Positions 15,343 to 58,463 are shown, counted from the first letter of the stretch. The stretch is 64,000 bases of DNA from Podarcis melisellensis (GCA_964234715.1 OZ174291.1), one strand, 5' to 3'. Program-made: numbers and translations. The notes: generated by a model not told the origin, from the sequence alone.

Positions 15343-15552
15343 TCAGCAGCAGCCTTGCTTAGGATAGCAGCAACAGGAACCACAGCCGCAAGATCCACAG
15401 CCACAGGAACCACAGCCGCAAGAGTTGCAGGAGCAGGGGGAAGAGCAGCAGCAGCAAGGAGTGCAGCAACAGTTAGGACTGCAGCAGCAGCAGGGGCAGC
15501 AGCAGCACTTGCAGCAGCAGGGAGAGCAGCAACAATTGGAGCAGCAGGACAT
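15343..15552 (-). CDS. Ultra-Cys-rich EDC protein, subfamily A copy 1 (EDPCCC-like), 69 aa
   Basis: [15 protein letters not shown]...CCCYPKQGCC, 36/69 Cys; acceptor 15579-15580, donor 16203-16204, TATATAAA 16277-16284, AATAAA 15073-15078. Confidence 0.9.
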   Translation of the reverse strand: MSCCSNCCCSPCCCKCCCCPCCCCSPNCCCTPCCCCSSPCSCNSCGCGSCGCGSCGCGSCCCYPKQGCC

Positions 15553-16204
15553 CTTAGCGGTGGAGAGGGAAGGCGGAGCTGAAAGGATTCAAGGGATTTC
15601 TCATTAAGCAAACACAACACAATATTAAGTACACCTTAGATGTACAAACATTAAAGCTTAAGACCAACATGAAACATATGTTTAAAGTTTGCTACACATT
15701 GCATCAAGGAAAGGAATGCATAAACTGGCCTCTTCTGAGTCTTTGTTGGGAACTCACTGGAAGTCAGAGGATGCTCTCTGAGCCCCCAACATCCTATTAA
15801 GAAACAGATGGCATGCTTGGCAGAAAAAAAGACTATCTTAGATCCTGGGCAACACAATATTAGGCAAACGTTTTAGTCCTACAATGCTGAAAGAATTCAG
15901 GCCTAAAGGCAAGATCCCAACTTCTCTTTGAATGAATAAAAACATGTGTTGTAAAAAATGGCATTTGCAAGAGACCTTCAATCCCTTGCCCCCAAGAGAA
16001 AAGTAGGCTTTGAGTTAGAATTAACATCAATTACGCTTTTCTCCATGCACACATCCTCATGTGGCAGGAGGCCAGGATTGGTCACCAAGAATAAGAAATA
16101 TAGTGAACCAGTTTCATTGCAAAACCGGAGCTGTTAGATTACATCCTAAAGACCTGAAGCTCTCCTGAAATCTAGGAAACCAAAAGAATGAAGACAGAAC
16201 ATAC

Positions 16205-17459
16205 CTTTTTCAGCAATAAGATTTGGTGTGGATGTTGGATCCAGTGAGTGAGTGAGGAACTCTTGAATGGTGGGCCTTTATATACCCCTCTGTGAATCCT
16301 CCTGCAAACAGTTATGCACCAACCAGTGATTACGAGGTCTTCATTAAAAGTCCTCTACCACACAATCATCAGGTGCATGATTCTTGACTCTGTCCACATC
16401 CGTCCATTTTAAAGGCAGGTGATTAAAGTTAAAGGCAGGTGATTAAAGTAATTCCCAGTTCTGTCCAAAGGGGGCACTTATGGAATTGCTTCAAATCAAT
16501 TATGTTCAGATGAACAGGCATCATATGTGTTTCTCTCTGAGATCTGATGCCATAGGGTATTAGTTTTTAGATTGTTGACCCATGGACACAATCTTTAGGC
16601 CATTCTTTCTTAGTACGTCATGCAACATGTACTCAAGGCAGGCCCATTAAAGTTCATAGACATGGCTGACTTTGCTTTATTCATTTTAGTGCTTCTACTC
16701 TAAGTAGAACTTCTGGATAGAAGCCAATTACTTTTGCACAGCTCAGATGTCTAGTGCAAATTACGCTGTGTTATTCTTTCTGTGTGACAGAATCCTGGAA
16801 GACAGTCATCGGAGGCAGCCCAAATGTATTGCAGTAGTCTAGCATTTAATTTTTGCTGTAGTAAACATTTGTGAAAGCCACATATTAAATCAAAAAATAT
16901 GGGACTGCTATTGTTCACCCTCCTGGTCAGCTAACCAAACAGCCACAATATGGTGGCAAATGCTATTCCTGTTTGCTCATTGCTGATAAATATGTGTTAT
17001 GATCATCAAATAACAAGTCCCATGGATCCAAACGTCAGATCCTTTGAGCTTGGGGCGGGAAGTAGAGTCAGAAGATCCGATGGTATTTCCTGGTAAAAGA
17101 AGGTGTTGGATCACGATGAGAAACTCCCACGGCACCCATTCATCTCAGCATAATTGTTTTTAAAAACAGTCCCATAACTGCACCTTTAATCAGGGCTGAG
17201 AATTACAGTGTTTCCAGAATACAGTTTTAATCATATACTTTTAAAAAGGGGGGGGGGGTTGTGAATACAGTCAGAGGTCATGCCCCAGATGACGGTGTGG
17301 GGCAGCATCAAGGTTTAATGCAGACCATTTAATTCTTCAGTTGTGCATCATGGATTATGAAAGGGTTGACAGAGGTATATAAAAAGGTCCACCTTCTTGG
17401 AATACTTCATCAACACACTGGATCCAATATCCACACAGCACCTCCTATACTGAACAAAG
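16205..17459. promoter_or_regulatory. Divergent promoter region of pair 1 with both non-coding first exons
   Basis: TATATAAA 16277-16284 (-) and 17376-17383 (+); donors at 16204 (-) and 17460 (+). Confidence 0.8.
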
Positions 17460-18371
17460 GTAAGCTCATTTCCAATATTTATGCATTCTTCCTATTTACT
17501 GCAGGGGAGCTGAAGGTTTGAGGGAGGCCAGTGACTCTGGTCTTGTGAAATGCATCTGAATCAAATGAACAGAGGGGCCAAGAGTCTCCCAATTTGGATT
17601 CTGTTAGCATTTCAGATTTCAGCATTTCAACCGGCATATTTTAATACATAGATCCATGCTGTTTTAAATAACAGACTCCTTGCGGGTTCTTTGGGTTTTA
17701 CTTGAACTAATCATCTAATTATCTCTTCAACAAATCTGTGTGATGGATGCTACATTTTCATAAGTTGTATTTTTGAGGACTGACCAGTTCCCCTGCCTCT
17801 GGGCTGTTGAATGGAGTCCTTATTACAGTAATGACTTCCCTAGAGATATAAATTTCTTCTCGTATCAACTGAGGAGGAATATTCCTCCCATAATATATTT
17901 CAAGTATACATCTAAAATTACTGATACCTACAACATAAAAAAGTGACACAGGGAAATAACCAGGGAACATGTCACATGTATTGAGCTGTGAGAGAATCAA
18001 GATTGTTTGTAGGGCCAATTGCTTTTGTAATGGGGGGACAAATCTGAGTTTCCTTTCACATAAAGGGGAAAATGGCCCAGGATTTAGTGTGAAGTTAAAA
18101 TCAATATTGAATTCTTGGTTGGATAGAATGCTCCATTTCAACACTCAACAGGCAGTCATTTCTCCCATGTTTTATATGACACCCAAATCTTTATGTAATG
18201 TAGGCGAATAATTTCAGCTCCATTATGAGCAGGAGAAAGTGTATGTGAAATATATAGTGCTTAAAGCAAAACACAAGTAAAATATGTCTTTAACACATCA
18301 GACGATGTGGCGCTTAGTTAACTGGTGATCCCTTGATTTCCTGCAGCTCAAGCTTCCTTCTCTTCCTCAAG

Positions 18372-18584
18372 ATGTCCTGCTGTTGCCAGTGTGGCTGCTC
18401 CCCTTGCTGCTGCAAGCAGTGCTGCTCTTCCCCTTGCTGCGGCTGTGGCTGTTGCAAGCAGTGTTGCTGCTCCCCTTGTTGTTGCAAGCAGTGTTGCTGC
18501 TCTTCCCCCTGCTGTGGTTCCGGGTGCTGTGGATCTTCCTGCTGTGGCTGCAAATGCTGCTATCCTAAGCAATGCAAATGCTGA
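18372..18584 (+). CDS. Ultra-Cys-rich EDC protein, subfamily B copy 1, 70 aa
   Basis: [16 protein letters not shown]...[12 protein letters not shown], 35/70 Cys; acceptor AG 18345-18346; AATAAA 18929-18934. Confidence 0.9.
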
Positions 18585-19413
18585 AGAACCCCAAGGAAAG
18601 CTCTCAATGTTTACAGGGAATCTACAATTGATAGTCCATTGAATAATCCCACCACCATGAGTACTGACTTCAAGGGCTGCTGCTTGATTCCTGACATTCA
18701 GACTCTCTCTGGAATGTCCTTCTTCATCCTCAAGTTGTGTCTTCCTCTCCTCTTCTTGTTCTGTACTCTTTGACTCGCCTGGATGTTCTCCTAGGAACCA
18801 TCTCTAACAAGGCATTTCCCATGGTGCCATCATGGCACTCTCTATGTGTGTGACTCTTTCTTTTTTCTTTCTCTTCTACATTTCTAATTCTTCTTTTATT
18901 GTACAATCTACCTGCTTGCATGGCAACTAATAAAATGGCAAACCGTCTCCTAAAGTCTTGTTTTATCTTCGCCTTAAATTGAATTGAGCGGAGGCTCAAT
19001 GTCTGTGAGCAGCCCCTGCTTGGATGTACATCATAGCCCACCACAATCGATGGCACTGAATGATCGGGGAGTGGGTTTGGGGAAAATGCACTGCTGCTTC
19101 AGTTATTGAAGGGCTACTCCAAGATGATGCAGGTAGATGATTCTGGGGTAGGTGGACCAACCATGTCATTGGACCATTCACATATATGGTATAGAAGCAA
19201 TAGCAGAGCAACTGCTTTGTAAGCAGAATGCCCAAGGTTCAACCACTGACATCTCCAGTTAGAAAATATTGAGCAGCAGTGTTGCCCACTTTCAATCTCT
19301 GCTTGCATGCTTCCTGAAGACATCTGAATGGAGTCACCATAGCACATTGCTGGGTACTGGAATAGTTGGTCATTTCTCCTGGATTTGGAGGGGTCTTCTT
19401 CTGTCCTTATGAC

Positions 19414-19920
19414 TATCAGGCATCAGATGACGCAAACCCCCATGGTAGGTCGCCAGGAACCGATAAGAAAAGGAAAGTCCTTAGCAATGCTTTTTATTCA
19501 ATATTCACAGAGAGAGAGGCTTAGAAATGGAGCATCTTGGAGTAATGGTGTTGCTCCGAGTGTTCCCCACATCCTCTGTCTCTCCCACTTCCTCATGAGC
19601 CATCGCTATGGATGCTGCAAAGTGCCTTTTACCTTTGAGCTCTTTGTGATCCTACTTTCAAGGCCCGCTGTGTTCTGGGGGGTGGGTGGGTCCTGGAACG
19701 CTTTCTAAATACACTGTGTCCATCAGCTGGCGCCCTCCTGGTGCTTCCTCTTCCTTCTTCTCCTCTCTCATTATTTCCCAACTTTCCCCCTCATCTGCCT
19801 CTGAGCTGTGATCACCCTCAAACCAAGCCCTGTTGTAATTCTGATCTGTCGCCGCCTTCTCTGTAAGGGTTAGGCAGGGGAGGCCATCTCCACCATTCCT
19901 CCTCTGCTCAGTCCTTGACA
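19414..19920 (-). mobile_element. Solo LTR (Gypsy-like)
   Basis: T(A)TCA...TGACA ends, 5-bp TSD ATGAC; empty site in the inverted paralog at ~54415. Confidence 0.75.
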
Positions 19921-20326: not shown

Positions 20327-21780
20327 GCCTATGGCACACAATCAGAACACAAACACAAGAGCACTGTGGCTTCCAGCAACTGGTATTAAGAACCATTACT
20401 GCCTAAAACTAACCGCCATTGTGGTTAGTAGCTCTGGAAAGTTCCACCTCCATGAATTTGTCTAATCCTGCTTTAAAGCCATCTAGGTTGGTGGTCAACA
20501 CGGCCTCCCGTGGGAGCACCTTTCATTGTTTTAACTATGCATTGCATGAAGACCTTCTTCTTCTCTGGGATCTTCCAGCAATCAGCTTTTAGACAATGAA
20601 AGGTAAAACACATGAAAACACACATGATCTTACACTACCCCAACTGATGGGAGGCTGGGAATTTACCTGGTAGGCTGAGGATAAGTAGATTCAAATGGCT
20701 TCTACTTCAAATCAGCCTCAATATCCTTACATCCTTCAAAAAAGGTACTCTTAAAATCCCAATATTCTACCCATTTTGCATGGAGGCATTTCATTATAAG
20801 ATGGACACTGACTGGCATCAGCTCTCCGGAGATGAACTTAGACCTTTCTGCATGCAAAATAGCTGCTCTACCACAGAGCTTTGATCCTTCCTTCCTAAAT
20901 GCCCTTTGGGGTTTCCTCCCAATTCTATGATTCTATTATTCTATGTATTTCTGGTGGCAGGTTCTCCAGCCCATCATCAAAACACTACAACTGCCATGGG
21001 GGACTTTGTCCAAAGCACTTCGTTATATCAATGTACAATAATTCCTCAGCAGCCCCATGATCCACCAAACTCGTAAATCTATCCAAAAAAGAATTGTGAT
21101 TCACCTGGCAGGAAGACTTTTTTTTGAGAAATTGATGTTGAGTCTTAGTAATCACAGCATCCTTTTCTATGTGCTCATAGGTCGACTGTTTAATTAACTT
21201 TGCTATAATCTTTCCTGGTATTGATGTCAAGCTGACCAGTCTGTAGCTACGTGAGTCTTCTCCCCACATACAAACTGTTTGAAGATGGGAACAGCATCAG
21301 CCCTTGTCCAGTCTGCAGGGATCTCACATTTCCTCCATGGATTCTCAAAAATTCTGGACAGAGGCTCTGTGGTTATATCTGTGGTTATATTCTATTATTC
21401 TATGAATTTCTGGTGGCAGGTTCTCCATCTCCATCCCATCATCAAAACACTACAACTGCCATGGGGGACTTTATCCAAAGCCTTAGCTAAATCAAGGTAC
21501 ACTATTTCTGCAGCAGCCCCGTCATCCACCAAGCTAATCTATCAAAAAAAGAATTGAGATTCATCTGGTATGAACAATATTTTGAGAAATCCATGTTGAG
21601 TCTTAGTAATCGCAACATCCTTTTCTATGTGCTCATAGGCCAACTGTTTAATTATCCATGCTATAATCTTTCCTGGTATTGATGTCAAACTGACCAGTCT
21701 GTAGCTACGTGGATCTTCTCCCCACATACAAACTGTTTGAAGATGGGAACAGCATCGGCCCTTGTCCAGTCTGCAGGGAC

Positions 21781-22279
21781 TTGATTGATTGATTTATTAC
21801 GGCCATTGACCCATATCTAAAAACAATACATCAAAATTTATCCATAATCAATACAATTTAAACAGTTCCAAGTTAAAACACCCCTATAAAACCAATTTTA
21901 CTTCCATTAAGTAAACTATACAGAATAAGCTCCCTCTATGTCAACCGCAATTCAAATCCCTCAGATTTGGGGGGATATGCGTCTTAGTTCTGGCACTTAT
22001 TGATGGTTCTTAAGTTTGGCTAAGCTGTCAGAGTCATACAGTGATCCATTTCTCCTCTTATGAAATAAGACATTAATCAGGTATCTAGCGACTGCAAGGG
22101 ATCTACTTGAGTCTTCGTCGTTTAATAAGTATATTATTTGGGCTTCCTGAGGTCTGTCAGCAATTCTCGATAAATATGGGGCCAGAAACTTGGACCGTGA
22201 AGCTGAATGTAAAGGACAACAGAAGATTATATGATATAACGATTCTATAGATCCACTTTTACAGTCAGAGAGAAGTGAC
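21781..22279 (-). mobile_element. 5'-truncated LINE 3' end (RTE-X/L2-superfamily-like) with (TCAA)n tail
   Basis: Stop-free frame 22269->21997 translating SDCKSGSIESLYHIIFCCPLHSASR... (C-terminal Cys/His motif of non-LTR ORF2); AATAAA then (TCAA)3; whole insert bounded by 14-bp TSD CAGTCTGCAGGGAC. Confidence 0.7.
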
Positions 22280-22313
22280 TCTTGGCCTTTTGGCTAAGAT
22301 CAAGTGTAGTATC
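22280..22313 (+). pseudogene. U2 snRNA 5' fragment (retrocopy)
   Basis: TCTTGGCCTTTTGGCTAAGATCAAGTGTAGTATC matches vertebrate U2 5' region including the GTAGTA branch-site recognition sequence, one CpG-type change. Confidence 0.9.
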
Positions 22314-22648
22314 AGTCTGCAGGGACCTCATGTTTCCTCCATGGATTCTCAAAAATTATGGACAGAGGCTCTGTGGTTATATCTGTAAGCTCCTTTAGTA
22401 CGCTTGGGTGCACCTCATCAGGCCTTGCCAATTTGAATCCATTTAAAGTAGCTAGGTGTTCCTTTGCCACCTATTTTCCTATCTGAGGCTGCAGTTCCTT
22501 CCTTGCACCTTTTATCCTGTTGTCACCAGGTTAGGTTCTGCTTTAATAATAAGTGAAGAGAGGGACAATGTAGGGGTTCAGCAGTTTCACCTCTTTTGCA
22601 AGACCGAGGTCATTCGAAGCTTTTGCTTGCCTGACCTTCATCCTGCAA

Positions 22649-23453: not shown

Positions 23454-24292
23454 CAACTGTTGGAAGGAAGGTGTATACCCTTCCTTCATGATTTCTCATT
23501 TCCTCCATTTAGCAGATATGCCCTTCTGAAATTTCATCTATAAGCCACTGATTTCTTTAGAGGACTCCAACTTTTCTTTCTTGTTGGAATAGTCTGCAAT
23601 TGTATGGAACTTGTTGGTATTCTCTGTCTTTGTGCCTTCAATATTTTGCCTTTAAGAAACTCCCATCCCTCTTGGACTCCCTTCTCTTTGAGTTTTTCTG
23701 ACCATGGGATCTCACCCATTTTCAAATACATCCAGATTTCCCATGCCTCTGTATCATGAAACCCAAGAAGATATGATCAGTTCCTTCCCAGGTCCCCAGT
23801 ACTTCTAATTCAATGATGAATTCCTGCCAGTTGGTAAGGACCAGGTCCAATATAGATAATCTATATGCTGCTTCCTTCACCTTCTGGGCAATGAAATGAT
23901 TAGTGAAGGAAAGTGAGGAATTTGTTGGGAATTATATTCTTGGGAGTGTGACAGATTCAACAGTTATCCAGAAGTCTCCTCTCACCCCAATTTAAGGGAA
24001 AGATACACCAAACTATAAGAGATGCTTTATCATTTTATTTGTTGCCATGAGAGCAGGTAGATTCTACAATAGCAGAATGTTCAGAAATGTAGCAGAGATA
24101 GAAAAGAGCGAGAAAAGAGAGTCACACACATTTCAAATGTCTTCCTTGTTAGAGAATGGCTGAGTGAATCAGGAAGATGAGTGCAAGCAGTCAACCAGCA
24201 GCCTTGACACCAGAGCTCCTGATGGTGGGATTGTTCATTGGACTGTATGCTGTAGACTCCCTGTTTGCATTCAGAGCTCCCCTTGGGGTTCT

Positions 24293-24520
24293 TCAGCATT
24301 TGCAGCCACAGCAGGAAGACCCACAGCACCCGGAACCACAGGAGGGGGAACAGCAGCAGCAGGGGGAGCAGCAACAGCTGGGGGAACAGCAGCAGCAAGG
24401 GGAGCAGCAACACTGTTTGCAACAACAGGGGGAGCAGCAACACTGCTTGCAGCAACAGGGGGAACAGCAGCACTGCTTGCAGCAACAAGGAGAGCAGCAA
24501 CACTTGCAACAGCAGGACAT
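24293..24520 (-). CDS. Ultra-Cys-rich EDC protein, subfamily B copy 2, 75 aa (short C-terminus)
   Basis: 3x [10 protein letters not shown], 42/75 Cys, ends GCKC; acceptor 24542-24543, donor 25034-25035; TATA altered (TATGTAAG). Confidence 0.85.
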   Translation of the reverse strand: MSCCCKCCCSPCCCKQCCCSPCCCKQCCCSPCCCKQCCCSPCCCCSPSCCCSPCCCCSPSCGSGCCGSSCCGCKC

Positions 24521-25035
24521 CTTGAGGAAGAGAAGGTTGAGCTGCAGGAAATCAAGGGATCACCAGTTAACTAAGCACCACATTGTTTGATGTGTTGAAG
24601 ACACATTTTACTGGTGCTTTGCGTTAAGAGCTGCCTATTTCACATCCTTTCCTCCTTCTTGTGACACAGCTGAAATAATTTCCCTATATTCAACTAAGAT
24701 TTGCTTGCTGTATAAAGCATGGGAGAAACATCTGCCTGATGAATGCTGACATGGACCAATTTGTCCAACCAAGAATTCAATAGTGATTCTGCCTTCCTTG
24801 TAAATCCAGGACCAGTTATAGAAAACACTTTAGCATTATGAAATAAAATATGCCAGTTGAGATGCTGAAATCTGGAACACTAAAAAAATCCAGTTTTGAG
24901 ACTGATAGCTTCTGTGCGCGTTCCGTTCAGAATGATTTTGCAAGAGCAGAGCCACTGGAGAACCTGCTCAGAATTTTCGTTTCCCTGCAATGAAGACAAC
25001 AAGAAGAATGAATAAATATTTGGAAACAAGCTTAC

Positions 25036-26342
25036 CTTTGTTGACTATAGGAATTGGTGTGTGGATATTGGATCCAGAGAGTGAATGAAGAACTCCAGGA
25101 TTGTGGTCCTTACATATGGCTCTGTGAACCCTTCGACAATCCATGAGGCACTAATCATGAATGAGAAGTTCTACATTAAACCTTGACGTTGGCCTCCACC
25201 ACACATTATTAGCTGGTGCGTGATCTGTGACTGTATTCACAACCCCTATTATTTATCTATATAAATACAGAAAAAATTAAAACTGCATTCTGCAAGCACT
25301 GTAATTCTCAGGCCAGATGAAGGGGCAGTTATGGGATTTGTTTTAAAACAATTATGCTATGATGAACGGAAATAATGAGAGCTTCTCATTGAGATCCTGC
25401 ACTGTTGTTGTGTTTTTAGCCAGGAAAAATTCTCCAGATCTTCTGACTGTACTTCCTGCCTCAAGCTCAAAGCACCTGACGATTGTATTCCCACGTCTTG
25501 GAATTTGATCCTCATAACACATATTTATCAGCAATTAACAGAAGTCAATAGCATGTGCCATCTTTTATTTTTTATTTTTTTTAAAAGGAGCTGAGCAGGA
25601 CAGTGAATGATAGAAGTTGCACATGTTTTTATTTAATATGTAGCTTTAACAAATGTTCATTACAGTAAAAAATAATTGCTAGACGAACACTTGGGCTCCA
25701 CAGCCTAATTTTCACCTGACATCTGAACCATGCAAAAGCAATTGGCTTGCATCCAGCTGAGTTCTACTTAGAGTAGGCAAACCTAAGTTAGCCATTTCTA
25801 TGGACTTTAATGGGCCTGCTCTGAGGGTGACTAGCAGTGGTTTCAATCCAGTGTCCTTAAAATATCTATCATCCTAAATCATTGTCTTATTAACATCACT
25901 TTATACATGCTGCAGGTTGTACTAAGGAAGAATGGCCTACATGTTGTGTCCACAGCTAAACAACCTGAAAACTAAAATCCTTAGGCATAAGATCTTTCAG
26001 AGAAGCCCATATGATGCCTGTTCATCCAAACATATTTGATTTCAAGTAATACCATAAGTGCCCCCTTTGGACAGAAGGGAGAATTAGAGTGTTACTACTG
26101 CAGAATAGCCTTAATCACCTGACTTCAGGAAGGAAGAATGTGGACACAGTCAAGGATCACGCAGCAGATGATTGTGTGGTAGAGGCCCATATTAAGGTTT
26201 AATGAAGACCTTGTCATCATTGTGTGGTTCATAATTGCTTGCGGAAGGCTTCACAGAGGTGTATATAAAGGCCCCCCATTCAGGAGTTCTTCACTCACTC
26301 ACTGGATCCAACATCCACACCGATTCTGACAACTGAAAAAAG
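25036..26342. promoter_or_regulatory. Divergent promoter region of pair 2 with both first exons
   Basis: TATA-position 25110-25117 (-), TATATAAA 26262-26269 (+), donors 25035 (-) and 26343 (+). Confidence 0.8.
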
Positions 26343-27174
26343 GTAAGTTCACTCCAATTATCTCTTCATTTTTTCAGTTCCAGGAAAGGTACGGTCTTGA
26401 GGATGTAGTCTAGCAGCTCTGGTTTTTCAATGCAACTTGCTCACTATTTATCTTACTCTTGGTGACAAATCTTGGCCTCCTGCCACATGGGGAGTTGTGC
26501 ATGGACAAAAGCTTGATTTCTTAGATTCTAATTCAAATTCAGAATTTACTTCTCTCTTGGAAATGAGGGATTCAAGATCTCAAAACGGTCTCCTGGATAC
26601 AAAACATGTCTTAACTCATTCACAGAGAAGCTAGGATCTTGCCTTCAAGCCTCAATTCTCTCAGAATTTTAGGACTAAAAATTTGCCTACTATCATCTTG
26701 CACCGGATCTAAAATGGAGGGCGGGACAGGGGTTTTCCTGACCAATCACACATTTCATATTGATCTACAACTCTAATGGTTGAATATAATTCATCTGTCA
26801 AACATGTTTGTTCACGAGGAAACCAGCATGGCCTGTGGCTCCCGATGGAGAAGGAGGTGGTTCCTGAAGAATCTGTTGTGCAATTCCTGAAATGGCACAG
26901 CACACCTGACACCTGAGCAAGAATCAAGGATAAATGCGCTAGATAAGCAGAAGGGTAGAGATGCATAGCCAAGACAACAGTGCATCCCATTTTGCTAACC
27001 AAAATGTCCTTTTAGGATCACTCAGAGGGAAACATGATGTGAAAATAATGTCTTTTCTGGTCACCTGAATGCAGAGCCTCTGTCTACAGTGTTTTAATAT
27101 GCCTGAGGATGTTGTTTGCTTAATGGGAAATCCCTTGAATCCTTTCAGCTCCGCCTTCCCTCTCCACCGCTAAG

Positions 27175-27387
27175 ATGTCCTGCTGCTCCAATTGTTGCTG
27201 CTCTCCCTGCTGCTGCAAGTGCTGCTGCTGCCCCTGCTGCTGCTCCTGCTGTCCTAGCTGTTGCTGTGTTCCTTGCTGCTGCTGCTCTTCCCCCTGCTGC
27301 TGCAACTCTTGCGGCTGTGGTTCCTGTGGTTGTGGCTGTTGTGGCTGTGGTTCCTGTTGCTGCTATCCTAAGCAAGGCTGCTGCTGA
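27175..27387 (+). CDS. Ultra-Cys-rich EDC protein, subfamily A copy 2, 70 aa
   Basis: MSCCSN...YPKQGCC, 39/70 Cys; acceptor AG 27147-27148; AATAAA ~27640. Confidence 0.9.
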   Translation: MSCCSNCCCSPCCCKCCCCPCCCSCCPSCCCVPCCCCSSPCCCNSCGCGSCGCGCCGCGSCCCYPKQGCC

Positions 27388-28572
27388 AGAAGTTCAGTGA
27401 AGGGTTGAGAGCTGCTGCCTCCTCCATGCTGGTGGACTCCTTGGATTCATCTCTTCCTGTGCCTTAAGTTTATTCCTGCCTCCTTCTACAACCCTGGATG
27501 CTTCTCATCTCCTTCTTACTTTGCTTTGTTTTCCTTCAAGGAGGCATGCCAGTTGTCTTCTCTTTATCACCTTAGTTGTCTAGGGAGTCACTCCTTGAAT
27601 AACTCGTCTGTGAAAAGAAAACCTTTCCCGGTGGCAATTAATAAAAAATCTAAAGCATGGTACATAGCCTTGTTGTGTTCCTTTGCCTTGAGATGCATAA
27701 AACGGCATAGATCCCCAAACAGGTGATCTGCTTTGCATTCAGGATCACTGACTGAGCTCCTCGGGAGCATATCTCCATCTCACATACAATATTGGAAAGG
27801 GGGCCATATCTCATTGGGAGAGCACATGCACGGCACCCTGTCAGGGCTGTTTCAGCTGCGGTTCAGCACTGAGACTCAGAGAGGATCAGTAAAGTTAATT
27901 CTCAATTCGAGATATAAAACACAAACAAGAGATCTCCACTGGCAGGACTAGCCTGATGAAAGTTGCCAGAACTGAGGATCTGAGCCTCCCAAGTCTCTTC
28001 CCCAGCTAGCTGCCTTCCTAACCATCACAAATGCATTTGAGGAGAGGTTCTCTGCACCTTTCGGTATGCTGCATGTAACACCCTCCTCATTCATGTAGAC
28101 AGGGGAGGAGGAGAGGGGAAAATAGTGGAACTGGCAGGTTGCTATGGATCTGTCAGAGCCTCAGCCCCTCCTCTTTCTCAGCTGCCTTACTCTAACGTAA
28201 AACTGTGGCTTGCTCAGCCTCCAGCCTGTCTGTCCCCCTTCTTTCTCTGAACTGTCCTGTATCCCACCATCATTGTCCTGGCTCAGAGGCTTCCACCTCT
28301 GATGTTCCCCTGGTGGTGGTGTGGTGGTGGGTGTTTCCCACTGGCTGTAGCCTTGCACCATTCCTCCTCATCTAGCCAGGCCCTGATACACATGTAACAT
28401 CCGAGGATTACAAGCTGTTATCTCTTCTTGAGCAAATGGATGTAAGGAGGATGGGGAGAAGCGATTCCCTTTGTGGTGGTGTTTGCATGAGGCTCTCTCG
28501 TGCAAACCTCATTGATTGGATGCCTATGAAAGGGAAGAGATTATACTCTGAAGTGCATCATTTTGAGTGCTA

Positions 28573-47310: not shown

Positions 47311-48394
47311 TCAAGGAGAGATACTGGCTAGTGATCCTTGGATGTTACATGTGTATCAGGGCCTGGCTAGATAAGGAGGAATGGTGGGAGGCTACAGCCA
47401 GCGGGAAAAGGACCCCCCCACCAGGGGAACATCAGAGGTGGAAGCCTCTGAGCCAGGACAATGATAGTGGGATACAGGACAGTTCAGAGAAAGAAGGGGA
47501 ACAGACAGGCTGGAGGCTGAGCAAGCCACAGTTTTACGTTAGAGTAAGGCAGCTGAGGAGGAGGAGGGGCTCAGGCTGTGACAGATCCACAGCAACCTGC
47601 CAGTTCCACTATTTTCCTCTCTCCTCTCCTGGTCTCCAAGAATGAGGAGGATGTTACATGAGCAGAACGAAAGGCACAGAGAACCTCTCCTCAAATGCGT
47701 TTGTGATGGTTAGGAAGGCAGCTGGCTGGGGAAGAGGCATAGGAGGCTCAGATTATCAGTTCTGGCAACTGTTTCATCAGGCTAGTCCTGCCAGTGGAGA
47801 TCTCTTGTTTGTGTTTCATATCTCGAATTGAGAATTAACTTTACTGATCCTCTCTGAGTCCCAGTGCTGAACCACAGCTGAACCCGCCCTGACAGGGTGC
47901 GATGCATGTGCTCTCCCAATGAGATATGGCCCACTTCCCAATATTGTATGTGAGATAGAAATATGCTCCCCAGGAGCTCAGCCATTGAACTTTTCTAGAC
48001 TGGGAGCTCTTCAGCTGGAGATACTTAGAGAATACAAAGCTGATCACCTATTTGGGGATCTATGCCGTATTCTGCATCTAAAGGCAAAGGAATACAACAA
48101 GGCTATGTACCATGCTTTAGAATTTTTATTAATTGCCACAGGGAAAGGTTTTCTTTTCACAGAGGAGTTATTCAAGGAGATGAAAGGAGAGTGACTCCCT
48201 AGACAACCAAGGTGATAAAGAGAAGACATCTGGCATGTCTCCTTGAAGGAAAACAAAGCAAAGTAAGAAGGAGATGAGAAGAGTCCAGGGTTGTAGAAGG
48301 AGGCAGGAATAAACTTAAGGCACAGGAAGAGATGAATCCAAGGAGTCCACCAGCATGGAGGAGGCAGCAGCTCTCAACCCTTCACTGAACTTCT

Positions 48395-48604
48395 TCAGCA
48401 GCAGCCTTGCTTAGGATAGCAGCAACAGGAACCACAGCCACAACAGCCACAACCACAGGAACCACAGCCGCAAGAGTTGCAGCAGCAGGGGGAAGAGCAG
48501 CAGCAGCAAGGAGTGCAGCAACAGGAAGGACAGCAGCAGCAGCAGGGGCAGCAGCAGCACTTGCAGCAGCAGGGAGAGCAGCAACAATTGGAGCAGCAGG
48601 ACAT
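48395..48604 (-). CDS. Ultra-Cys-rich EDC protein, subfamily A copy 5, 69 aa
   Basis: 39/69 Cys; donor 49454-49455, TATATAAA 49528-49535. Confidence 0.9.
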   Translation of the reverse strand: MSCCSNCCCSPCCCKCCCCPCCCCCPSCCCTPCCCCSSPCCCNSCGCGSCGCGCCGCGSCCCYPKQGCC

Positions 48605-49455
48605 CTTAGCGGTGGAGAGAGAAGGTGGAGCTGAAAGTATTCAAGGGATTTCCCATTAAGCAAGCACAATGTCCTCATCCATATTAAAAACACTGTAGAC
48701 AGATGCTCTGCATTCAGGTGACCAGAAAAGACATGATTTCCACATCATGTTTCCCTCTGAGTGATCCTAAAAGTACATTTTGGTTAGCAATATTCCAACA
48801 TTTCTGCTGGGATGCAGTGTTGTCTTGGCTATGCATCTCTACCCTTCTGCTTATCTAGAGCATTTATCCTTGATTCTTGCTCAGGTCAGGTGTGCTGTGC
48901 CATTTCAGGAATTGCACAACAGATTGTTCAGGAACCACCTCCTTCTCCACTGGGAGCCACAGACCCTGCTGGTTTCCTCATGAACACACATGTTTGAAAG
49001 ATGAATTATATTCAACCATTATAGTTGTAGATCAATATGAAATGTGTGATTGGTCAGAAAAACCCCTGTCCCGCCCCCCATTTTAGATCCTGTGCAAGAC
49101 GATAGTAGGCAAATTTCTAGTCCTAAAATGCTGAGAGAATTGAAGCCTGAAGGCAGGATCCTAGCTTCTCTGAGAATGAGTTAAGGCATGTTTTGTATCC
49201 AGAAGACCTTTTTGAGATCTTGAATTCCTTGTGTCCAAGAGATTCTTGAATTTGAATTAGCATCTAAGAAATCATGCTTTTGTCCACGTACAACTCCCCA
49301 TGTGGCAGGAGGCCAAGATTTGTCACCAAGAGTAAGATAAATAGTGAGCAAGATGAAGTGAAAAACCAGAGCTGTTAGACTACATCCTCAAGACCTCAAG
49401 CTCTCCTGAAATCTAGGGTACCAAAAGAATGAAGAGATAGTGGGACAGAACATAC

Positions 49456-50594
49456 CTTTTTCAGTAATAAGAACTGGTGTGGATGTTGGATCCAGTGAGT
49501 GAGTGAAGAACTCCTGAATGGGGGGCCTTTATATACACCTCTGTGAACCCTTCCGCAAGCAATTATGAATCACGCAATGATGACAAGTTCATCTACCACA
49601 CAATCATCTGGTGCGTGATCCTTGACTGTGTCCACATTCTTCCTTTCTGAAGTCAGGTGATGAAGGCTATTCTGCAGTAGTAACACTCTAATTCTCCCTT
49701 CTGTCCAAAGGGGGCACTTATGGGATTGCTTGAAATCAAATATGTTAGGATGAACAGGCATCAGATGGGCTTCTCTCAAAGATCTTATGCCTGGATTGAA
49801 ACCACTGCTAGTCACACTCAGAGCAGGCCCATTAAAGTCCATAGAAATGGCTAACTTAGGTTTGCCTACTCTAAGTAGAACTCAGCTGGATGCAAGCCAA
49901 TTGCTTTTGTATGGTTCAGATGTCAGGTGAAAATTAGGCTGTGGAGCCCAAGTGTTCGTCTAGCAATTATTTTTTACTGTAATGAACATTTGTTAAAGCT
50001 ACATATTAAATAAAAACATGTGCAACTTCTATCATTCACTGTCCTGCTCAGCTCCTTAAAAAATAAAAATAAATAATAAATGGCACATGCTATTGACATC
50101 TGCTCATTGCTGATAAATATGTGTTATGAGGATCAAATTCCAAGACCTGGGAATACAATCGTCAGGTGCTTTGAGCTTGAGGCAGGAAGTACAGTCAGAA
50201 GATCTGGAGAATTTTTCCTGGCTAAAAACACAACAGTGCAGGGTCTCAATGAGAAGCTCTCATTATTTCCGTTCATCATAGCATAATTGTTTTAAAACAA
50301 ATCCCATAAGTGCCCCTTCATCTGGCCTGAGTTTTTCCAGAATGCAGTTTAAATTTTTTCTGTATTTATATAGATAAATAATAGGGGTTGTGAATACAGT
50401 CACAGATCACGCACCAGCTAATAATGTGTGGTGGAGGCCAACGTCAAGGTTTAATGTAGAGCTTCTCATTCATGAGTAGAGCCTCATGGATTGTGGAAGG
50501 GTTCACAGAGCCATATAAAAGGACCACAATCCTGGAGTTCTTCATTCACTCTCTGGATCCAATATCCACACACCAATTCCTATAGTCAACAAAG
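49456..50594. promoter_or_regulatory. Divergent promoter region of pair 5 with both first exons
   Basis: TATATAAA 49528-49535 (-), TATAAAA 50514-50520 (+), donors 49455 (-), 50595 (+). Confidence 0.8.
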
Positions 50595-51511
50595 GTAAGC
50601 TTGTCTCCAAATATTTATTCATTCTTCTTGTTTCCTTCATTGCAGGGAAACGAATATTCTGAGCAGGTACTCCAGTGGCTCTGGTCTTGCAAAATCATTC
50701 TGAACGGAACGCACACAGTCGATATCAGTCTCAAAACTGGATTTTTTTTAGTGTTTCAGATTTCAGCATCTCAACTGGCATATTTTATTTCATAATGCTA
50801 AAGTGTTTTGTATAACTGACTTTTTATAGGTTCGTTGGCATGGTAAAGGCCAAAGTAGATGGTACCATCGAATTATCTCTTCACCATATCTGTTTCATGG
50901 ATTTGCAATTTTTAGTTCTGAGGACTGACCATTTAAGCCGTCTTTGGGCTGTTAACTGGAGTCCTCAGGGCAACCATGAAGTAGTGATTTCCCTGGAGAT
51001 AATAACTTTTTCACATATCATCTGAAGAATATTTCATGCATTTTAGATACATAGATATATATAATAATTGATGTCAGCAGCATAAAAAATGTAACAGATA
51101 GATATAACCAGCCCGTATGCATCCAGCTAAGGTAGAATCTGGATTTCCTCTAGGCTGTTGTTTATTTTATACTTGAGGAAACCTCTGAGATCCCCTTAAC
51201 ACAGAAAGCAAAATAGTCCTGGATTTACAATGAAGGCCGAATCACTATTGAATTCTTGGTTGGAGAAATTGGTCCATTTCAGCATTCATCAGGCAGATGT
51301 TTCTCCCATGCTTTATACAGCAAGCAAAACTTAGTTGAATATAGGGAAATTATTTCAGCTGTGTCACAAGAAGGAGGAAAGGGTGTGAAATAGGCAGCTC
51401 TTAATGCAAAGCACCAGTAAAATGTGTCTTCAACACATCAAACAATGTGGTGCTTAGTTAACTGGTGATCCCTTGATTTCCTGCAGCTCAAGCTTCCTTC
51501 TCTTCCTCAAG

Positions 51512-51706
51512 ATGTCCTGCTGTTGCAAGTGTTGCTGTTCCCCCTGTTGCTGCAAGCAGTGTTGCTGCTCCCCCTGCTGTTGCTGCAAGAAGTGTTGCTG
51601 CTCCCCCTGTTGCTGCAAGCAGTGTTTCTGCTCCCCTTGCTGCTGCTGTTCCCCCTGCTGTGGTTCCGGGTGCTGTGGGTCTTCCTGCTGTGGCTGCAAA
51701 TGCTGA
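51512..51706 (+). CDS. Ultra-Cys-rich EDC protein, subfamily B copy 5, 64 aa (short C-terminus)
   Basis: [16 protein letters not shown]...GSSCCGCKC; acceptor AG 51485-51486; AATAAA 51961. Confidence 0.9.
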   Translation: MSCCCKCCCSPCCCKQCCCSPCCCCKKCCCSPCCCKQCFCSPCCCCSPCCGSGCCGSSCCGCKC

Positions 51707-51999
51707 AGAACCCCAAGGGGAGCTCTGAATGCAAACAGGGAGTCTACAGCATACAGTCCAATGAACAATCCCACCATCAGGAGCTCTGGCGTCAAGGCTG
51801 CTGGTTGACTGCTTGCACTCATCTTCCTGATTCACTCGGCCATTCTCTAACAAGGAAGACATTTGAAATGTGTGTGACTCTCTTTTCCTCGCTCTTTTCT
51901 ATCTCTGCTACATTTCTGAACCTTCTGCTATTGTAGAATCTACCTGCTCTCATGGCAACAAATAAAATGATAAAGCATCTCTTATAGTTTGGTGTATCT

Positions 52000-53340: not shown

Positions 53341-55241
53341 GAACCTGCCACCAGAAATTCATAGAATAATAGAATCATAGAATTGGAGGAATCATAGAAT
53401 TGGGAGGAAACCCCAAAGGGCATTTAGGAAGGAAGGATTGTAGCTCTGTGATAGAGCATCTATTTTGCATGCAGAAAAGTCTAAGTTCATCTCCGGAGAG
53501 CTGATGCCAGTCAGTGTCCATCTTATAATGAAATGCCTTCATGCAAAATGGGTAAATTATTGGAATTTTGAGAGTATTTTGTTTGCTTGTTAAATAATTG
53601 AAGGATGGAGGGATATTGAGGCTGATTTGAACTAGTAGCCATTTGAGTCTACTTATCCTCAGCCTACCAGATAAATTCCCAGCCTCCTATCAGTTGGGGT
53701 AGTGTACGATCATGTGTGTATTTGTGTGTGTTTTACCTTTCATTGTCTAAAAGCTGACTGCTGGAATATCTCAGAGAAGAAGAAGGTCTTCATGCAGTGC
53801 ATAGCTAAAACAATGAAAGGTGCTCCCACGGGAGGCTGTGTTGACCACCAACCTAGATGGCTTTAAAGCAGGAGTTGACATATTCATGGAGGCGGAATTT
53901 CCCAGAGCTATGAACCACAATGGCTGTGCAATGTCTCCAAGTTTTAGGCAGTAATGGTTCTTAATACCAGTTGCTGGAAACCACAGTGCTCTTGTGTTTG
54001 TGTTCTGATTGTGTGCCATAGGCCAGGGGTGGCCAGCTCCCAAGAGACTGTGATCTACACACAGAGTAAAAAAGTGGCAGTGGGGTTGAGGTCAAAGTTG
54101 TTGAGTTTTTTAAGGGAGAAGGTAAAATGTTGAGCTTTTTTTAGGGGAGCCACAGTTGTTCAGAGTCTTTTGGGGGAGCCAGTGATCTACCACAGATATC
54201 CAGTGATCTACTGGTAGATTATGATCTACCTGTTGGACATGCCTGCTATAGGCATCTGGCTCGCCATTGTGAGGACAGGATGCAAGACCAGACAGGCCAT
54301 TGATTAGATTGAGCAAGCTCTTCTTAGAATCATGGAATCTTAGAGTTAGAAGGGAGCCAAGGGTCACCATGTCCAACCCCATGTTTGTATGTTCTTAAAT
54401 TACCTGGAACACAGTCATAAGGACAGAAGTAGACCGCTCCAAATGACCCCTCCAGAAGAATAGACCAACTAGTTTCTTCCACTACCAAACAGTTTCCTAC
54501 AGTGACTCCATTGAGATGTCTTCAGGAAGAATGCAAGCACAGGTTGGAAGTGAGCAACACTGCTGCTCAAGACTTTCCTAACTGCAGATGTCAGTGGTTG
54601 AACCTTACAGAACAGTTGCTCTGCTATTGCTTCTATACCATATATGTGAATGGTCCAATGATATGGTTGGTCCACCTACCCCAGAATCATCTACCTGCAT
54701 CATCTTGGAGTAGTCCTTCAATAACTCAAGCAGCAGTGCATTTTCCCCAACCCCCCTGGATCATTCAATGCCATAGATTGGGGTAGGGTATGGTGTACAT
54801 TGAAAGTAGTGCTGCTCACACACATTGAGCCTCCCCTCAATTCAATTTAAGGTGAAGATAAAAAAAGACTTTAGGAGATTGTTTGCCATTTTATTAGTTG
54901 TCATGCAAGCAGGTACATTGTACAATAAAAGAAGAATTAGAAATGTAGAAGAGAGAGAAAGAGAAAGAGTCACACACATTGAGAGAGTCATGATGACACC
55001 ATGGGAAATGCCTCGTTAGAGATGGCTCCTAGGAGAACATCCAGGTGAGTCAAAGAGTGCAGAACTAAAAGAGGAGAAGAAGACACAACTTGAGGATTAA
55101 ACACATTCCAGAGAGATATATAGTCTGAATGTGAGGAATCAAGCAGTAGCCCTTGCAGTCAGTACTCATGGTGGTGGGATTATTCAATGGACTATCAATT
55201 GTAGATTCCCTGTAAACATTGAGAGCTTCCCTTGGGGTTCT

Positions 55242-55469
55242 TCAACATTTGCCTTGCTTAGGATAGCAGCATTTGCAGCCACAGCAGGAAGAGCCACAGC
55301 ACCCGGAACCACAGCAGGGGGAAGAGCAGCAGCAGGGGGAAGAGCAGCATTGCTTGCAACAACAGGGGGAGGAACAACACTGCTTGCAACAGCTGCAGCC
55401 ACAGCAGGGGGAGCAGCAGCACTGCTTGCAGCAGCAAGGGGAGCAGCCCCACTGGCAACAGCAGGACAT
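55242..55469 (-). CDS. Ultra-Cys-rich EDC protein, subfamily B copy 6, 75 aa
   Basis: MSCCCQWGC...CCYPKQGKC; donor 56326-56327, TATATAAA 56404-56411. Confidence 0.9.
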
Positions 55470-56327
55470 CTTGAGGAAGAGAAGGAAGCTTGAGCTGCAG
55501 GAAATCAAGGGATCACCAGTTAACTAAGTGCTACATCGTCTGATGTGTTAAAGACATATTTTACTTTTCATTAATCACTGCATATTTCACATACCTTTTC
55601 TCCTACTCGTTAGGGAGCTGAAATTATTTGCCTATATTACACAAAGATTTGTGTGTCATATAAAATATGGGAGAAATGTCTGTCTGTTGAGTGCACCTTC
55701 AGACTAAATCCTAGCCATTTCCCACTTTATCTAAAAAGAAACTCAGATTTGTCCCCCCATTACAAAAGCAATTGGCCCTACAAACAATCTTGATTCTCTC
55801 ACAGCTCAATACATGTGACGTGCCCTGGTTATTTGCAGGTGTCACCTTTTTATGTTGTAGGTATCAGTAATTTTGATGTATACTTGAAATATATCATGGG
55901 AGGAATATTCCTCCTCAGTTGATACGAGAAGAAATTTATATCTCTAGGGAAGTCATTACTATAATAAGGACTCCCTTCAGCAGCCCAAAGGCAGGGGAAC
56001 TGGTCAGTCCTCAAAACTACAACTTATGAAAATGTAGCATCCATCACACAGATTTGTTGAAGAGATAAATAGATGATCCGATCAAGTAAAACCCAAAGAA
56101 CCTGCAAGGAGTCTGTTATTTAAAACAGCATGGATCTATGTATTAAAATATGCCGGTTGAGATGCTGAAATCTGAAATGCTAACAGAATCCAAATTGGGA
56201 GAGTGTTGGCCCCTCTGTTCATTTGATTCAGATGCATTTCACAAGACCAGAGTCACTGGCCTCCCTCAAACCTTCAGCTCCCCTGCAATAAATAGGAAGA
56301 ATGCATAAATATTGGAAATGAGCTTAC

Positions 56328-57575
56328 CTTTGTTCAGTATAGGAGGTGCTGTGTGGATATTGGATCCAGTGTGTTGATGAAGTATTCCAAGAATGTGGAT
56401 CTTTTTATATACCTCTGTCAACCCTTCACAATCCATGATGCACAACTGAAGAATTAAATGGTCTGCATTAAACCTTGATGCTGCCCCACACCGTCATCTG
56501 GGGCATGACCTCTGACTGTATTCACAACCCCCCTTTTTAAAAGTATATGATTAAAACTGTATTCTGGAAACACTGTAATTCTCAGCCCTGATTAAAGGGG
56601 CAGTTATGGGACTGTTTTTAAAAACAATTATGCTGAGATGAATGGGTGCCATGGGAGTTTCTCATCGTGATCCAACACCTTCTTTTACCAGGAAATACCG
56701 TCGGATCTTCTGACTCTACCTCCCTCCCCAAGCTCAAAGGATCTGACGTTTGGATCCATGGGACGTTATTTGATCCTCATAACACATATTTATCAGCAAT
56801 GAGCAAACAGGAATAGCATTTCCCATCGTTTTGTGGCTGTTTGGTTAGCTTAGCAGGAGGGTGAACAATAGCAGTCCCATTTTTAAAAATTTTATATGTG
56901 GCTTTCACATATGTTTACTACAGCAAAAAATAAGTGCTAGATTACTGCAGTACATTTGGGTTACCTCTGATGCCTGTCTTCCAGGATTCTGTCACACAGA
57001 AAGCATATCACAGCCTAATTTGCACCAGACATCTGAGCCATGCAAAAGTAATTGGCATGTATCCAGAAGTTCGACTTAGAGTAGTAGCGCTGAAATGAAT
57101 AAACCAAAGTCAGCCATGTCTATGAACTTTAATGGGCCTGCCCTGAGTACATGTTGCATGCTGTACACAGAAAGAATGTCCTAAAGGTTGTGTCCATGGG
57201 TCAACAATCAAAAAGTAACACCCTATTGCATCAGATCTCAGAGAGAAACACATATGATGCCTGTTCATCTGAACATAATTGATTTGAAGCAATTCCATAA
57301 GTGCCCCCTTTGGACAGAACTGGGAATTACAGTGTTGCAACTGCAGAATAACTTTAATCACCTGCCTTTAAAATGGACGGATGTGGACAGAGTCAAGAAT
57401 CATGTACCTGATGATTGTGTGGTAGAGGACTTTTAATAAAGACCTCATCATCATTGAGTCGTGCATAATTGCTTGTGGAAGGATTCACAGAGGTGTATAT
57501 AAAGGCCCACCATTCAGGAGTTCTTCACTCACTCACTGGATCCAACATCCACACCAAATTTTATTGCTGAAAAGG
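56328..57575. promoter_or_regulatory. Divergent promoter region of pair 6 with both first exons
   Basis: TATATAAA 56404-56411 (-) and 57496-57503 (+), donors 56327 (-), 57576 (+). Confidence 0.8.
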
Positions 57576-58253
57576 GTATGTTCTGTCTTCATTCTTTTGG
57601 TTCCTTTGATTTCAGGAGACCTTCAGGTCTTGAGGATGTAGTCTAACAGCTCCAGTTTTGCAATGAAACTGGTTCACTATATTTCTTATTCTTGGTGAAC
57701 AATCTTGTTTTGCTGCCTCATGGGAGTTGTGCATGGAGAAAAGCGTACTAATTAGATGCTAATTCTAATTCAAAACCTTCTTATCTCTTCAGTGCAAGGG
57801 ATTGAAGATCTCATCCAGGTCTCTTGCAAATGCCATTTGTTACAAGACATATCATTATTCATTCAAAGAGAAGTTGGGATGTTGCCTTTAGGCCTGAATA
57901 CTTTCAGCACTGTAGGACTAAAACTTTTGCCTAGTATTGTGTTGCACAAGATCTAAGGTAGTCTTTTTTCTGCCAAGCATGTCATGTATTGCATAATAGG
58001 ATGTTGGCTCAAACAGAATTCTCTCAAGATATCTTAGCCTGACTTCCAGTGAGTTCCCAAGGGAGATTTAGAACAGGCCAGTTTATGCATTCCTTTCCTT
58101 GATGCAATGTGTAGCATTCTTTAATCATACATTTCATGTTGGTCTTAAGCTTTAATGTTTGTACATCTAAGGTGTACTTAATATTGTGTTGTGTTTATTT
58201 AATGAGAAATCCCTTGAATCCTTTCAGCTCCGCCTTCCCTCTCCACCGCTAAG

Positions 58254-58463
58254 ATGTCCTGCTGCTCCAATTGTTGCTGCTCTCCCTCCTGCTGCAAGTG
58301 CTGCTGCTGCCCCTGCTGCTGCTGCTGTCCTTGCTGTTGCTGCACTCCTTGCTGCTGCTGCTCTTCCCCCTGCTGCTGCAACTCTTGCGGCTGTGGTTCC
58401 TGTGGTTGTGGCTGTTGTGGCTGTGGTTCCTGTTGCTGCTATCCTAAGCAAGGCTGCTGCTGA
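58254..58463 (+). CDS. Ultra-Cys-rich EDC protein, subfamily A copy 6, 69 aa
   Basis: 39/69 Cys; acceptor AG ~58226-58227; AATAAA ~58710. Confidence 0.9.
   Translation: MSCCSNCCCSPSCCKCCCCPCCCCCPCCCCTPCCCCSSPCCCNSCGCGSCGCGCCGCGSCCCYPKQGCC

Follow-up and report, generated by a model that had tools for sequence, protein, structure and literature searches.

Paired EDPCCC genes in a lizard epidermal differentiation complex: evidence for an inverted-duplicate origin and for copying of the pair as a unit

Why should a locally expanded family of cysteine-rich genes be laid out as divergent pairs, each made of one gene of either of two types? The question is raised by a 64,000-nucleotide stretch of one strand from Podarcis melisellensis (GCA_964234715.1, OZ174291.1), called the window here, in which six head-to-head pairs of genes for extremely cysteine-rich proteins lie between 15343 and 58463. 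An earlier sequence-only reading of this DNA had proposed that the amplified unit is a divergent two-gene cassette and that the spacer within the cassette is a shared, bidirectional control region. Our analysis bears out the first proposal and finds no support in the sequence for the second. We consider it likely that the locus is an array of EDPCCC genes in the epidermal differentiation complex (EDC) in which a pair that arose by inverted duplication was amplified as a unit, with purifying selection acting on one gene type (QK) and gene conversion on the other (SN), and in which the pair has been retained through the linkage of its genes to their promoters.

Twelve predicted EDPCCC genes in six divergent pairs

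A scan of the whole window for ATG-to-stop open reading frames (ORFs) with at least 20% cysteine returned 14, of which 12 make up the array (Table 1). All 12 are intact and lie where the sequence-only reading had placed its six divergent A/B pairs. The predicted proteins are 64-95 amino acids (aa) long, contain 46.7-58.6% cysteine (at least 50% in 10 of the 12) and two to seven PCCC motifs each, and fall into two types, here named SN and QK, the A and B of that reading. Proteins of the SN type (69-77 aa) start with MSCCSNCCCSP, carry CGCGS repeats toward the C-terminus and one internal lysine, and end in CCCYPKQGCC; those of the QK type (64-95 aa) start with MSCCCQ/KC, contain two to five CCCKQ units with their KQ motifs, and either have or lack a CYPKQCKC tail. 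Lysine and glutamine content differs consistently between the types. The strands of the 12 genes alternate strictly and each of the six head-to-head pairs joins an SN to a QK gene, with no A/A or B/B pair among them, as had been claimed; tail-to-tail neighbours are mixed (in order, QK/QK, SN/QK, SN/QK, SN/SN and QK/QK). From the labels alone, six heterotypic pairs would be expected by chance with P=0.069 and strict strand alternation with P=0.0005. The pairing pattern is only mildly improbable on that footing, and it is settled by the DNA homology of whole cassettes.

Gene models were built by aligning the six head-to-head intervals in one orientation, together with a motif-anchored feature table, and they rest on sequence signals. 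Every gene has a TATA box (TATATAAAGGCC in SN genes, TATATAAAAAGG or CATATAAAAGGA in QK genes, and a degenerate CATATGTAAGG in the QK gene of pair 2), followed by a non-coding exon 1, about 80 nt long when counted from the TATA box, that holds CTGGATCCAAyATyCACAC and ends in AAAG before the donor GTAwGy. An intron of 494-1144 nt leads in all 12 to an acceptor 21-26 nt 5' of the ATG (TTTCAG before CTCCGCC..., or TTTCCTGCAG before CTCAA...), the entire coding sequence (CDS) lies within exon 2, and a poly(A) signal (AATAAA or ATTAAA) stands 246-346 nt 3' of the stop. An in-frame ATG at 42882 is intronic, so that the true start of the pair 4 SN gene is 42933. The TATA boxes of a pair are 934-1144 bp apart, in agreement with the 0.93-1.15 kb of the sequence-only reading, and all 12 genes have the layout it had recognised as that of sauropsid single-coding-exon EDC (SEDC) genes: a TATA box, a short non-coding exon 1, an intron in the 5' untranslated region (5'UTR) and a CDS wholly in exon 2. 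The same layout is described for the family (PMC11431283) and is found in python EDPCCC4 (PMC5366951), whose exon 1 and intron are confirmed by an RNA-seq read (PMC5366951 Suppl. Fig. S3) and whose TATA-proximal sequence is almost identical to that in the window (TATAAAAGGTCCCCCATTC vs TATAAAGGCCCCCCATTC).

We identify the 12 as EDPCCC genes, that is, SEDC genes with PCCC motifs, of a lacertid-like lizard. The family was named in 2017 for members in the anole and in snakes, where it occupies a cysteine-rich segment of the EDC between EDPQ1 and EDQL and where a snake member is expressed in skin (PMC5366951). In 2024, 16 EDPCCC genes with more than 50% cysteine were reported in Podarcis muralis (PMC11431283); the cysteine content of the family is about 45% in anole and cobra and above 50% in the wall lizard. 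The N-terminal 11-mers of both types occur exactly in the P. muralis supplement, 4 and 6 times (PMC11431283), and the P. muralis proteins have the same C-terminal ends (CCCYPKQGCC or CCYPKQCKC), more than 50% cysteine, PCCC motifs and conserved lysine and glutamine, as in the window.

The order of the genes points the same way. After EDCS2L (-), Table S2 for P. muralis lists EDPCCC1 to EDPCCC8 as QK+, SN+, QK-, SN+, QK-, SN+, SN- and QK+ (PMC11431283), and the window has an EDCS2L-like gene in the same position, 5' of the array, and then the type and strand series of those eight genes. The published coordinates place P. muralis genes head-to-head in pairs 3/4, 5/6, 7/8 and probably 10/11, the ATGs of a pair being 2.2-3.1 kb apart (PMC11431283); for the first three of these the distance is 2.8-3.1 kb, compared with 2.65-3.16 kb in the window. 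Two window genes, those at 15343 (-) and 24293 (-), are without a listed counterpart in the P. muralis table. Since CDS lengths and intergenic distances differ from those of P. muralis, we take the window to hold the orthologous locus, from a different lacertid, haplotype or assembly. The suggestion that the locus is EDC-like is borne out by the EDCS2L-like neighbour and by collinearity with P. muralis NC_041327.1 at 6.046-6.091 Mb, which is inside the EDC of that species; the window ends short of S100A, PGLYRP3 and loricrin.

Inverted origin of the pair and its amplification

In all six pairs the promoter-exon 1 region of the QK gene aligns colinearly with that of its SN partner (66-77% identity, E 9e-15 to 1.6e-43), and the coding exons of the two types cross-match at 69-74%. 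The mirrored promoter covers about 120-250 bp per gene, and only the central 430-640 bp of the spacer, which is rich in insertions and deletions, is unmirrored. These alignments therefore indicate that the pair arose as an old inverted duplication of a single EDPCCC gene, carrying 120-250 bp of promoter, exon 1, intron and coding exon, and that the duplicates then diverged into the SN and QK types. The pair itself is probably an innovation of the lacertid lineage, because anole EDPCCC3 and EDPCCC4 are quite different in sequence.

Comparison of the window with itself shows how such pairs relate to one another. The first and last cassettes match in inverted orientation over 4.6 kb (14850-19414 with 58938-54413, 89%), pairs 2 and 3 match directly over 4.4 kb with a period of 6.2 kb (23610-27869 with 29806-34225, 91%), both match pair 5 inverted at 88-95%, and pair 4 matches pairs 2, 3 and 5 at 77-92%. 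When the SN half, the QK half and the central spacer were each given a maximum-likelihood tree of their own, all three came out with one topology, ((p1,p6),(p4,(p5,(p2,p3)))), with support of 100 for the deeper branches and 60-100 for the grouping of pairs 2 and 3. Because all three parts share one tree, the pair was copied as a unit, and the data indicate at least five copying events, direct and inverted, of a segment of about 6 kb that includes the whole pair. The claim that the amplified unit is the divergent two-gene cassette thus stands. Inversions account for the orientation of pair 1 relative to pair 6 and of pair 5 relative to pairs 2 and 3. The duplication junctions, among them those at 21.8-23.5, 29.8, 47.3 and 52.5-52.9 kb, lie in retroelement-rich tail-to-tail DNA, in which interspersed repeats occur as well.

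The array continues beyond the window, because a seventh cassette, inverted, begins at its edge with the 3' flank and 3'UTR of an SN gene: 63957-64000 is 100% identical to the 3'UTR of the SN genes and 63046-64000 matches 33710-34671 at 92%. At 60708-61088 lies an orphan QK fragment, such as a break within a cassette would be expected to leave. The adjoining sequence, 61108-62768, matches 37497-38544 in inverted orientation at 93-96%.

Some further observations concern DNA outside the paired genes. Weak matches (68-69%) to the SN promoter and TATA region occur at 29555-29726 (-) and 46021-46192 (+), about 2.2 kb downstream of SN genes, and their flanks are 95% identical (29149-29773 vs 46603-45974); they may be the remains of an older EDPCCC gene, now degenerate, that travelled with the duplication unit. 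An interspersed repeat of about 350 bp, probably resembling a short interspersed element, is found at 6889-7243, 10844-11191, 34674-35025 and 36864-37216 in both orientations (74-91% identity). Rfam at gathering thresholds gave nothing in the whole window, and a permissive Rfam search at 46.5-47.5 kb likewise gave nothing, with no hammerhead confirmed at E<=0.1. The EDCML-like gene in Table 1 resembles P. muralis EDCML, which sits elsewhere in the published array, so that a paralogue in this position may be unannotated.

Table 1. Predicted genes, spacers and other features of the window (UTR, untranslated region; poly(A) column gives the position of the signal)
Feature	Span	Strand	TATA	Exon 1 donor	Exon 2 from	CDS	Protein	Poly(A)	Remarks
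Pair 1 SN gene	15073-16284	-	16284	G 16204	15578	15343-15552	69 aa, 52% Cys	15078	
Pair 1 spacer	16285-17375								1092 bp between TATA boxes
Pair 1 QK gene	17376-18934	+	17376	17460	18347	18372-18584	70 aa, 50% Cys	18929	
Pair 2 QK gene	24034-25118	-	25118	25035	24541	24293-24520	75 aa, 56% Cys	24039	TATA degenerate; without CYPKQCKC tail
Pair 2 spacer	25119-26261								1144 bp, TATA to TATA
Pair 2 SN gene	26262-27645	+	26262	26343	27149	27175-27387	70 aa, 56% Cys	27640	
Pair 3 QK gene	30278-31428	-	31428	31345	30851	30543-30830	95 aa, 56% Cys	30283	5.9 copies of 30-nt unit; tail deleted
Pair 3 spacer	31429-32571								1144 bp
Pair 3 SN gene	32572-33964	+	32572	32653	33458	33484-33696	70 aa, 41 Cys (58.6%)	33959	
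Pair 4 QK gene	39273-41028	-	41028	40945	39801	39549-39776	75 aa, 51% Cys	39278	With tail
Pair 4 spacer	41029-41961								934 bp
Pair 4 SN gene	41962-43438	+	41962	42042	42907	42933-43166	77 aa, 52% Cys		CCCTPS expansion
Pair 5 SN gene	48125-49535	-	49535	49455	48630	48395-48604	69 aa, 56.5% Cys	48130	
Pair 5 spacer	49536-50511								977 bp
Pair 5 QK gene	50512-51966	+	50512	50595	51487	51512-51706	64 aa, 56% Cys	51961	Tail deleted
Pair 6 QK gene	54890-56411	-	56411	56327	55494	55242-55469	75 aa, 47% Cys	54895	With tail
Pair 6 spacer	56412-57495								1085 bp
Pair 6 SN gene	57496-58715	+	57496	57576	58228	58254-58463	69 aa, 56.5% Cys	58710	
Orphan QK fragment	60708-61088	+							Promoter, exon 1 and about 220 nt of intron, no exon 2; 90-93% identical to pairs 2/3
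Seventh SN-type gene	63046-64000	-							3' flank and 3'UTR; CDS starts just past window end
EDCML-like short Cys-rich SEDC gene	5218-5421	+					67 aa		MSCCCCRGRG...LPIQQCCPPGKRC; SEDC-type acceptor
EDCS2L-like SEDC gene	8825-9427	-					200 aa, 41% Cys		About 11 copies of 42-nt unit; acceptor CTCTTTCAG directly before ATG
Retroelement ORF fragments, degenerate	20985-21269; 38709-38999	-; +							RVT_1 E=8e-5, gag E=3e-4; below Pfam gathering score; in tail-to-tail intervals
U2 snRNA-like pseudogene	22274-22438	+							RF00004, 44.8 bits vs gathering 46, full model length; tail-to-tail junction of cassettes 1/2

Selection, gene conversion and the question of shared control

QK coding sequences bear the mark of strong purifying selection, with ratios of nonsynonymous to synonymous divergence (dN/dS) of 0.04-0.13 at dS 0.23-0.54. 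In the SN genes of pairs 1, 2, 3, 5 and 6, dS is 0-0.11, while SN introns are about 65% identical across the deep split, and it is for this reason that SN coding exons appear to have been homogenised from one cassette to another, for which gene conversion limited to exon 2 is the simplest explanation. The tract of near-zero dS covers 15343-15578, 27149-27387, 33458-33696, 48395-48630 and 58228-58463 and so spans inverted copies too. The SN gene of pair 4, which lies outside the tract (dS 0.57-0.65, dN/dS about 0.2), would have escaped conversion. Protein length has changed in other ways: an in-frame 24-nt deletion between TGCAAATGC direct repeats, common to the QK genes of one clade of cassettes (pairs 2, 3 and 5), removed the CYPKQCKC tail (stop regions at 24293-24300, 30543-30550 and 51699-51706), and slippage of repeat units alters length further, as in the pair 3 QK gene.

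A plausible scenario explaining why the two genes have stayed together is that a breakpoint inside the pair would part a gene from its promoter; retention would then owe nothing to a common control element, and the orphan promoter and exon 1 fragment at 60.7 kb would be a casualty of such a breakpoint. The SN and QK genes are probably co-expressed, because the genes of a pair carry paralogous proximal promoters. Going by published work on the family, their products would come from keratinocytes undergoing terminal differentiation in hard, cornified structures of the skin, and would there be locked into the matrix of keratin and corneous beta-proteins by dense disulfides and by transglutaminase links at the conserved lysines and glutamines, with copy number serving dosage. 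Anole EDPCCC3 and EDPCCC4 have been detected by proteomics in toes.

How the spacer has evolved bears directly on whether it acts as a control region. Between the two deepest cassette lineages, identity is about 65% in the SN intron, 68-76% in the QK intron, 76-79% in the central spacer, 68-87% in the proximal promoters, 78-92% in the exon 1 region and 92-100% in the exon 2 5'UTRs. A whole-cassette alignment has bases from all six copies in only 37% of central-spacer columns, of which 70% are invariant; introns reach 35-65% and 55-65% on these two measures, and proximal promoters 71-90% and 70-74%. When only well-aligned 50-column bins are compared, the invariant fraction is 0.67 in the spacer and 0.62-0.64 in introns. 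The central spacer is conserved no better than the introns.

The alternative that survives best is that the spacer is indeed a shared bidirectional control region, and that the A/B pair is held together by selection for making two partner proteins within the same cells and in a fixed ratio, as in the silkmoth chorion. That all six divergent pairs are heterotypic, inversions included, is what this reading would predict, and the spacer is kept in every copy, with blocks of 8-25 nt that are invariant in all six and lie mostly within 260 bp of the SN TATA box or 140 bp of the QK TATA box. The consistent lysine and glutamine difference between the types would suit complementary cross-linking, and there is precedent in the chorion A/B pairs, HcA/HcB included (PMC4639761). 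We nevertheless think this reading unlikely, and part company here with the sequence-only reading, for the following reasons: (i) both genes of a pair possess a TATA box and a copy of the duplicated proximal promoter, which suffices to explain co-expression; (ii) the start sites, as estimated from the TATA boxes, are separated by about 1.0-1.2 kb, borderline or too far for bidirectional pairs, whose usual limit is 1 kb; (iii) CpG observed/expected in the spacer (0.17-0.24) is at background (0.22 in the whole window); (iv) conservation is at the level of the introns; (v) a scan of the spacers for AP-1, CRE, GATA, KLF/Sp, C/EBP, AP-2, GRHL and POU sites and p63 half-sites found none conserved in six copies, a canonical AP-1 site included, the C/EBP-like and POU-like matches each being common to only some copies; and (vi) in the worm lizard Rhineura floridana two EDPCCC types alternate on one strand, with RNA-seq evidence marked 'yes' in the table rows consulted, so that head-to-head geometry is unneeded in this family. 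A classical CpG-island bidirectional promoter was considered separately and rejected, as the spacer is AT-rich (GC 0.39-0.41) with background CpG and there is a TATA box on both genes.

By analogy, the cassette might further be viewed as a vertebrate counterpart of HcA/HcB, in which the spacer would enforce matched-dose co-expression of a KQ-rich and a KQ-poor protein. We regard this as quite unlikely; if true, the unit of amplification on which selection acts in the hard skin structures of lacertids would be the pair rather than the individual gene.

It is also possible to see the array as a neutral by-product of segmental duplication, without dosage function, most of whose copies are silent or decaying. 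Table S2 for P. muralis marks RNA-seq evidence as 'no' for all 16 EDPCCC genes, NCBI tracks for them being empty of reads (PMC11431283), possibly a matter of tissue sampling, the TATA box of the pair 2 QK gene is degenerate, and partial copies are present at 60708-61088, 29555-29726 and 46021-46192. Set against this, ORFs, splice sites and poly(A) signals are intact in 12 of 12 genes, dN/dS of the QK genes is low, 92-96% of exon 2 5'UTR positions are invariant, conservation of coding exons far exceeds that of introns, and expression of family members is on record for snake skin, anole toes and Rhineura. Wholesale silence is, on these grounds, very improbable. That the alternating inverted copies are an assembly artefact of mis-joined or mis-oriented units is hardly credible and was rejected: assembly is difficult where tandem and inverted units of about 6 kb are 89-95% identical, and the window does hold one gap (155 N, 8015-8169), but this only gap is not within the array, the non-coding DNA of the copies differs by 5-35% and their CDS lengths also vary, and the independent chromosome assembly of P. 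muralis has the same type and strand order for EDPCCC1-8, including the inverted SN-/QK+ pair 7/8.

The invariant spacer blocks, which would be compatible with a shared enhancer, and the P. muralis RNA-seq entries count against our own account of promoter-linked retention in an amplified inverted-duplicate pair, as do the following points: (i) the 12 genes are predicted from sequence; (ii) the dN/dS values are approximate, the coding sequences in the alignment being repetitive; (iii) the comparison with P. muralis is one of published coordinates, CDS lengths and motif matches and not a DNA alignment, the supplement having been read by machine from a PDF with evident reading errors; and (iv) a word-seeded HMMER search of a protein database with one SN and one QK query gave no match, which is uninformative given the composition, and an exact look-up of ten of the proteins in a protein collection found none. 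Pfam gave no family for the cysteine-rich proteins, a blank that is expected from composition and uninformative on relatives.

Meaning and comparison with known systems

The EDPCCC family had been described before, as had its extreme cysteine content and its expansion in a lacertid. The head-to-head arrangement is implicit in the P. muralis coordinates, and term searches of that paper's main text turned up nothing on pairing, an inverted origin, joint duplication of the genes or conversion tracts; in its Figure 1, arrays of three or more genes are drawn as boxes (PMC11431283). The sequence-only reading knew of no description of such paired cassettes, and an explicit one is absent from those EDPCCC papers that were searched. 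What is new here is the anatomy and history of the cassette: the two genes of a pair as inverted copies, promoter included, the common tree of its parts, the purifying selection on QK genes and the apparent conversion of SN coding exons. A mirror-image two-gene unit, with its promoter-inclusive inverted duplication, inversions and exon-limited conversion, could serve as a model for how EDC subfamilies grow and stay uniform. The paired unit would explain how annotation of an array may miss partners, two window genes being unlisted in P. muralis, and defined promoter and spacer fragments are now at hand for reporter tests. Current understanding of the EDC is not overturned.

A further comparison is with Rhineura floridana, which has EDPCCC1-10, of which two types alternate (4, 6, 8 and 10 vs 5, 7 and 9), so that a two-gene unit has been amplified there too. 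Unlike in the window, all ten genes share one strand, the head-to-tail unit recurring about every 14 kb, and the two types there (MSCCGSHRCSR... and MANGECQSS...) are distinct from SN and QK. The neighbouring EDCS3L and EDCS5 genes of Rhineura repeat as a three-gene unit, and multi-gene amplification units are common in this part of the squamate EDC. Because the Rhineura genes are head-to-tail, a head-to-head layout is unnecessary for EDPCCC function.

Mammalian ultra-high-sulfur keratin-associated proteins (KRTAPs) and avian EDCRP resemble EDPCCC proteins in being small, repetitive, cysteine-rich components of the matrix of hard cornified appendages whose genes form multi-copy clusters. KRTAP genes are located outside the EDC, and we know of no head-to-head two-type cassette described for KRTAPs or EDCRP. 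EDCRP lies in the syntenic EDC region, and the cysteine content of both KRTAPs and EDCRP is lower than that of EDPCCC (PMC11431283).

There is a more distant precedent for the architecture itself. At the silkmoth (Bombyx mori) chorion locus, most A and B genes, including the late high-cysteine HcA and HcB genes, form pairs whose members are transcribed in opposite directions from a common promoter, and rates of gene conversion are high (PMC4639761). As in the window, two paralogous families of cysteine-rich structural proteins, disulfide-cross-linked in the chorion, form divergent A/B pairs that are amplified as pairs (in the chorion, into tandem arrays) and undergo gene conversion (in the window, apparently in SN exon 2 only); the likeness is one of analogy, not homology, as the proteins are unrelated and belong to an insect eggshell in an unrelated lineage. 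The chorion pair also differs in having one short common promoter region, where the window has two separate TATA-proximal promoter copies 0.93-1.14 kb apart with the central 430-640 bp between them. The common promoter region of the chorion is about 300 bp long and experimentally bidirectional, and by that figure the lizard spacer is several times longer. With these differences, the parallel with HcA/HcB would be a tidy case of convergent architecture for disulfide-hardened extracellular and cornified materials.

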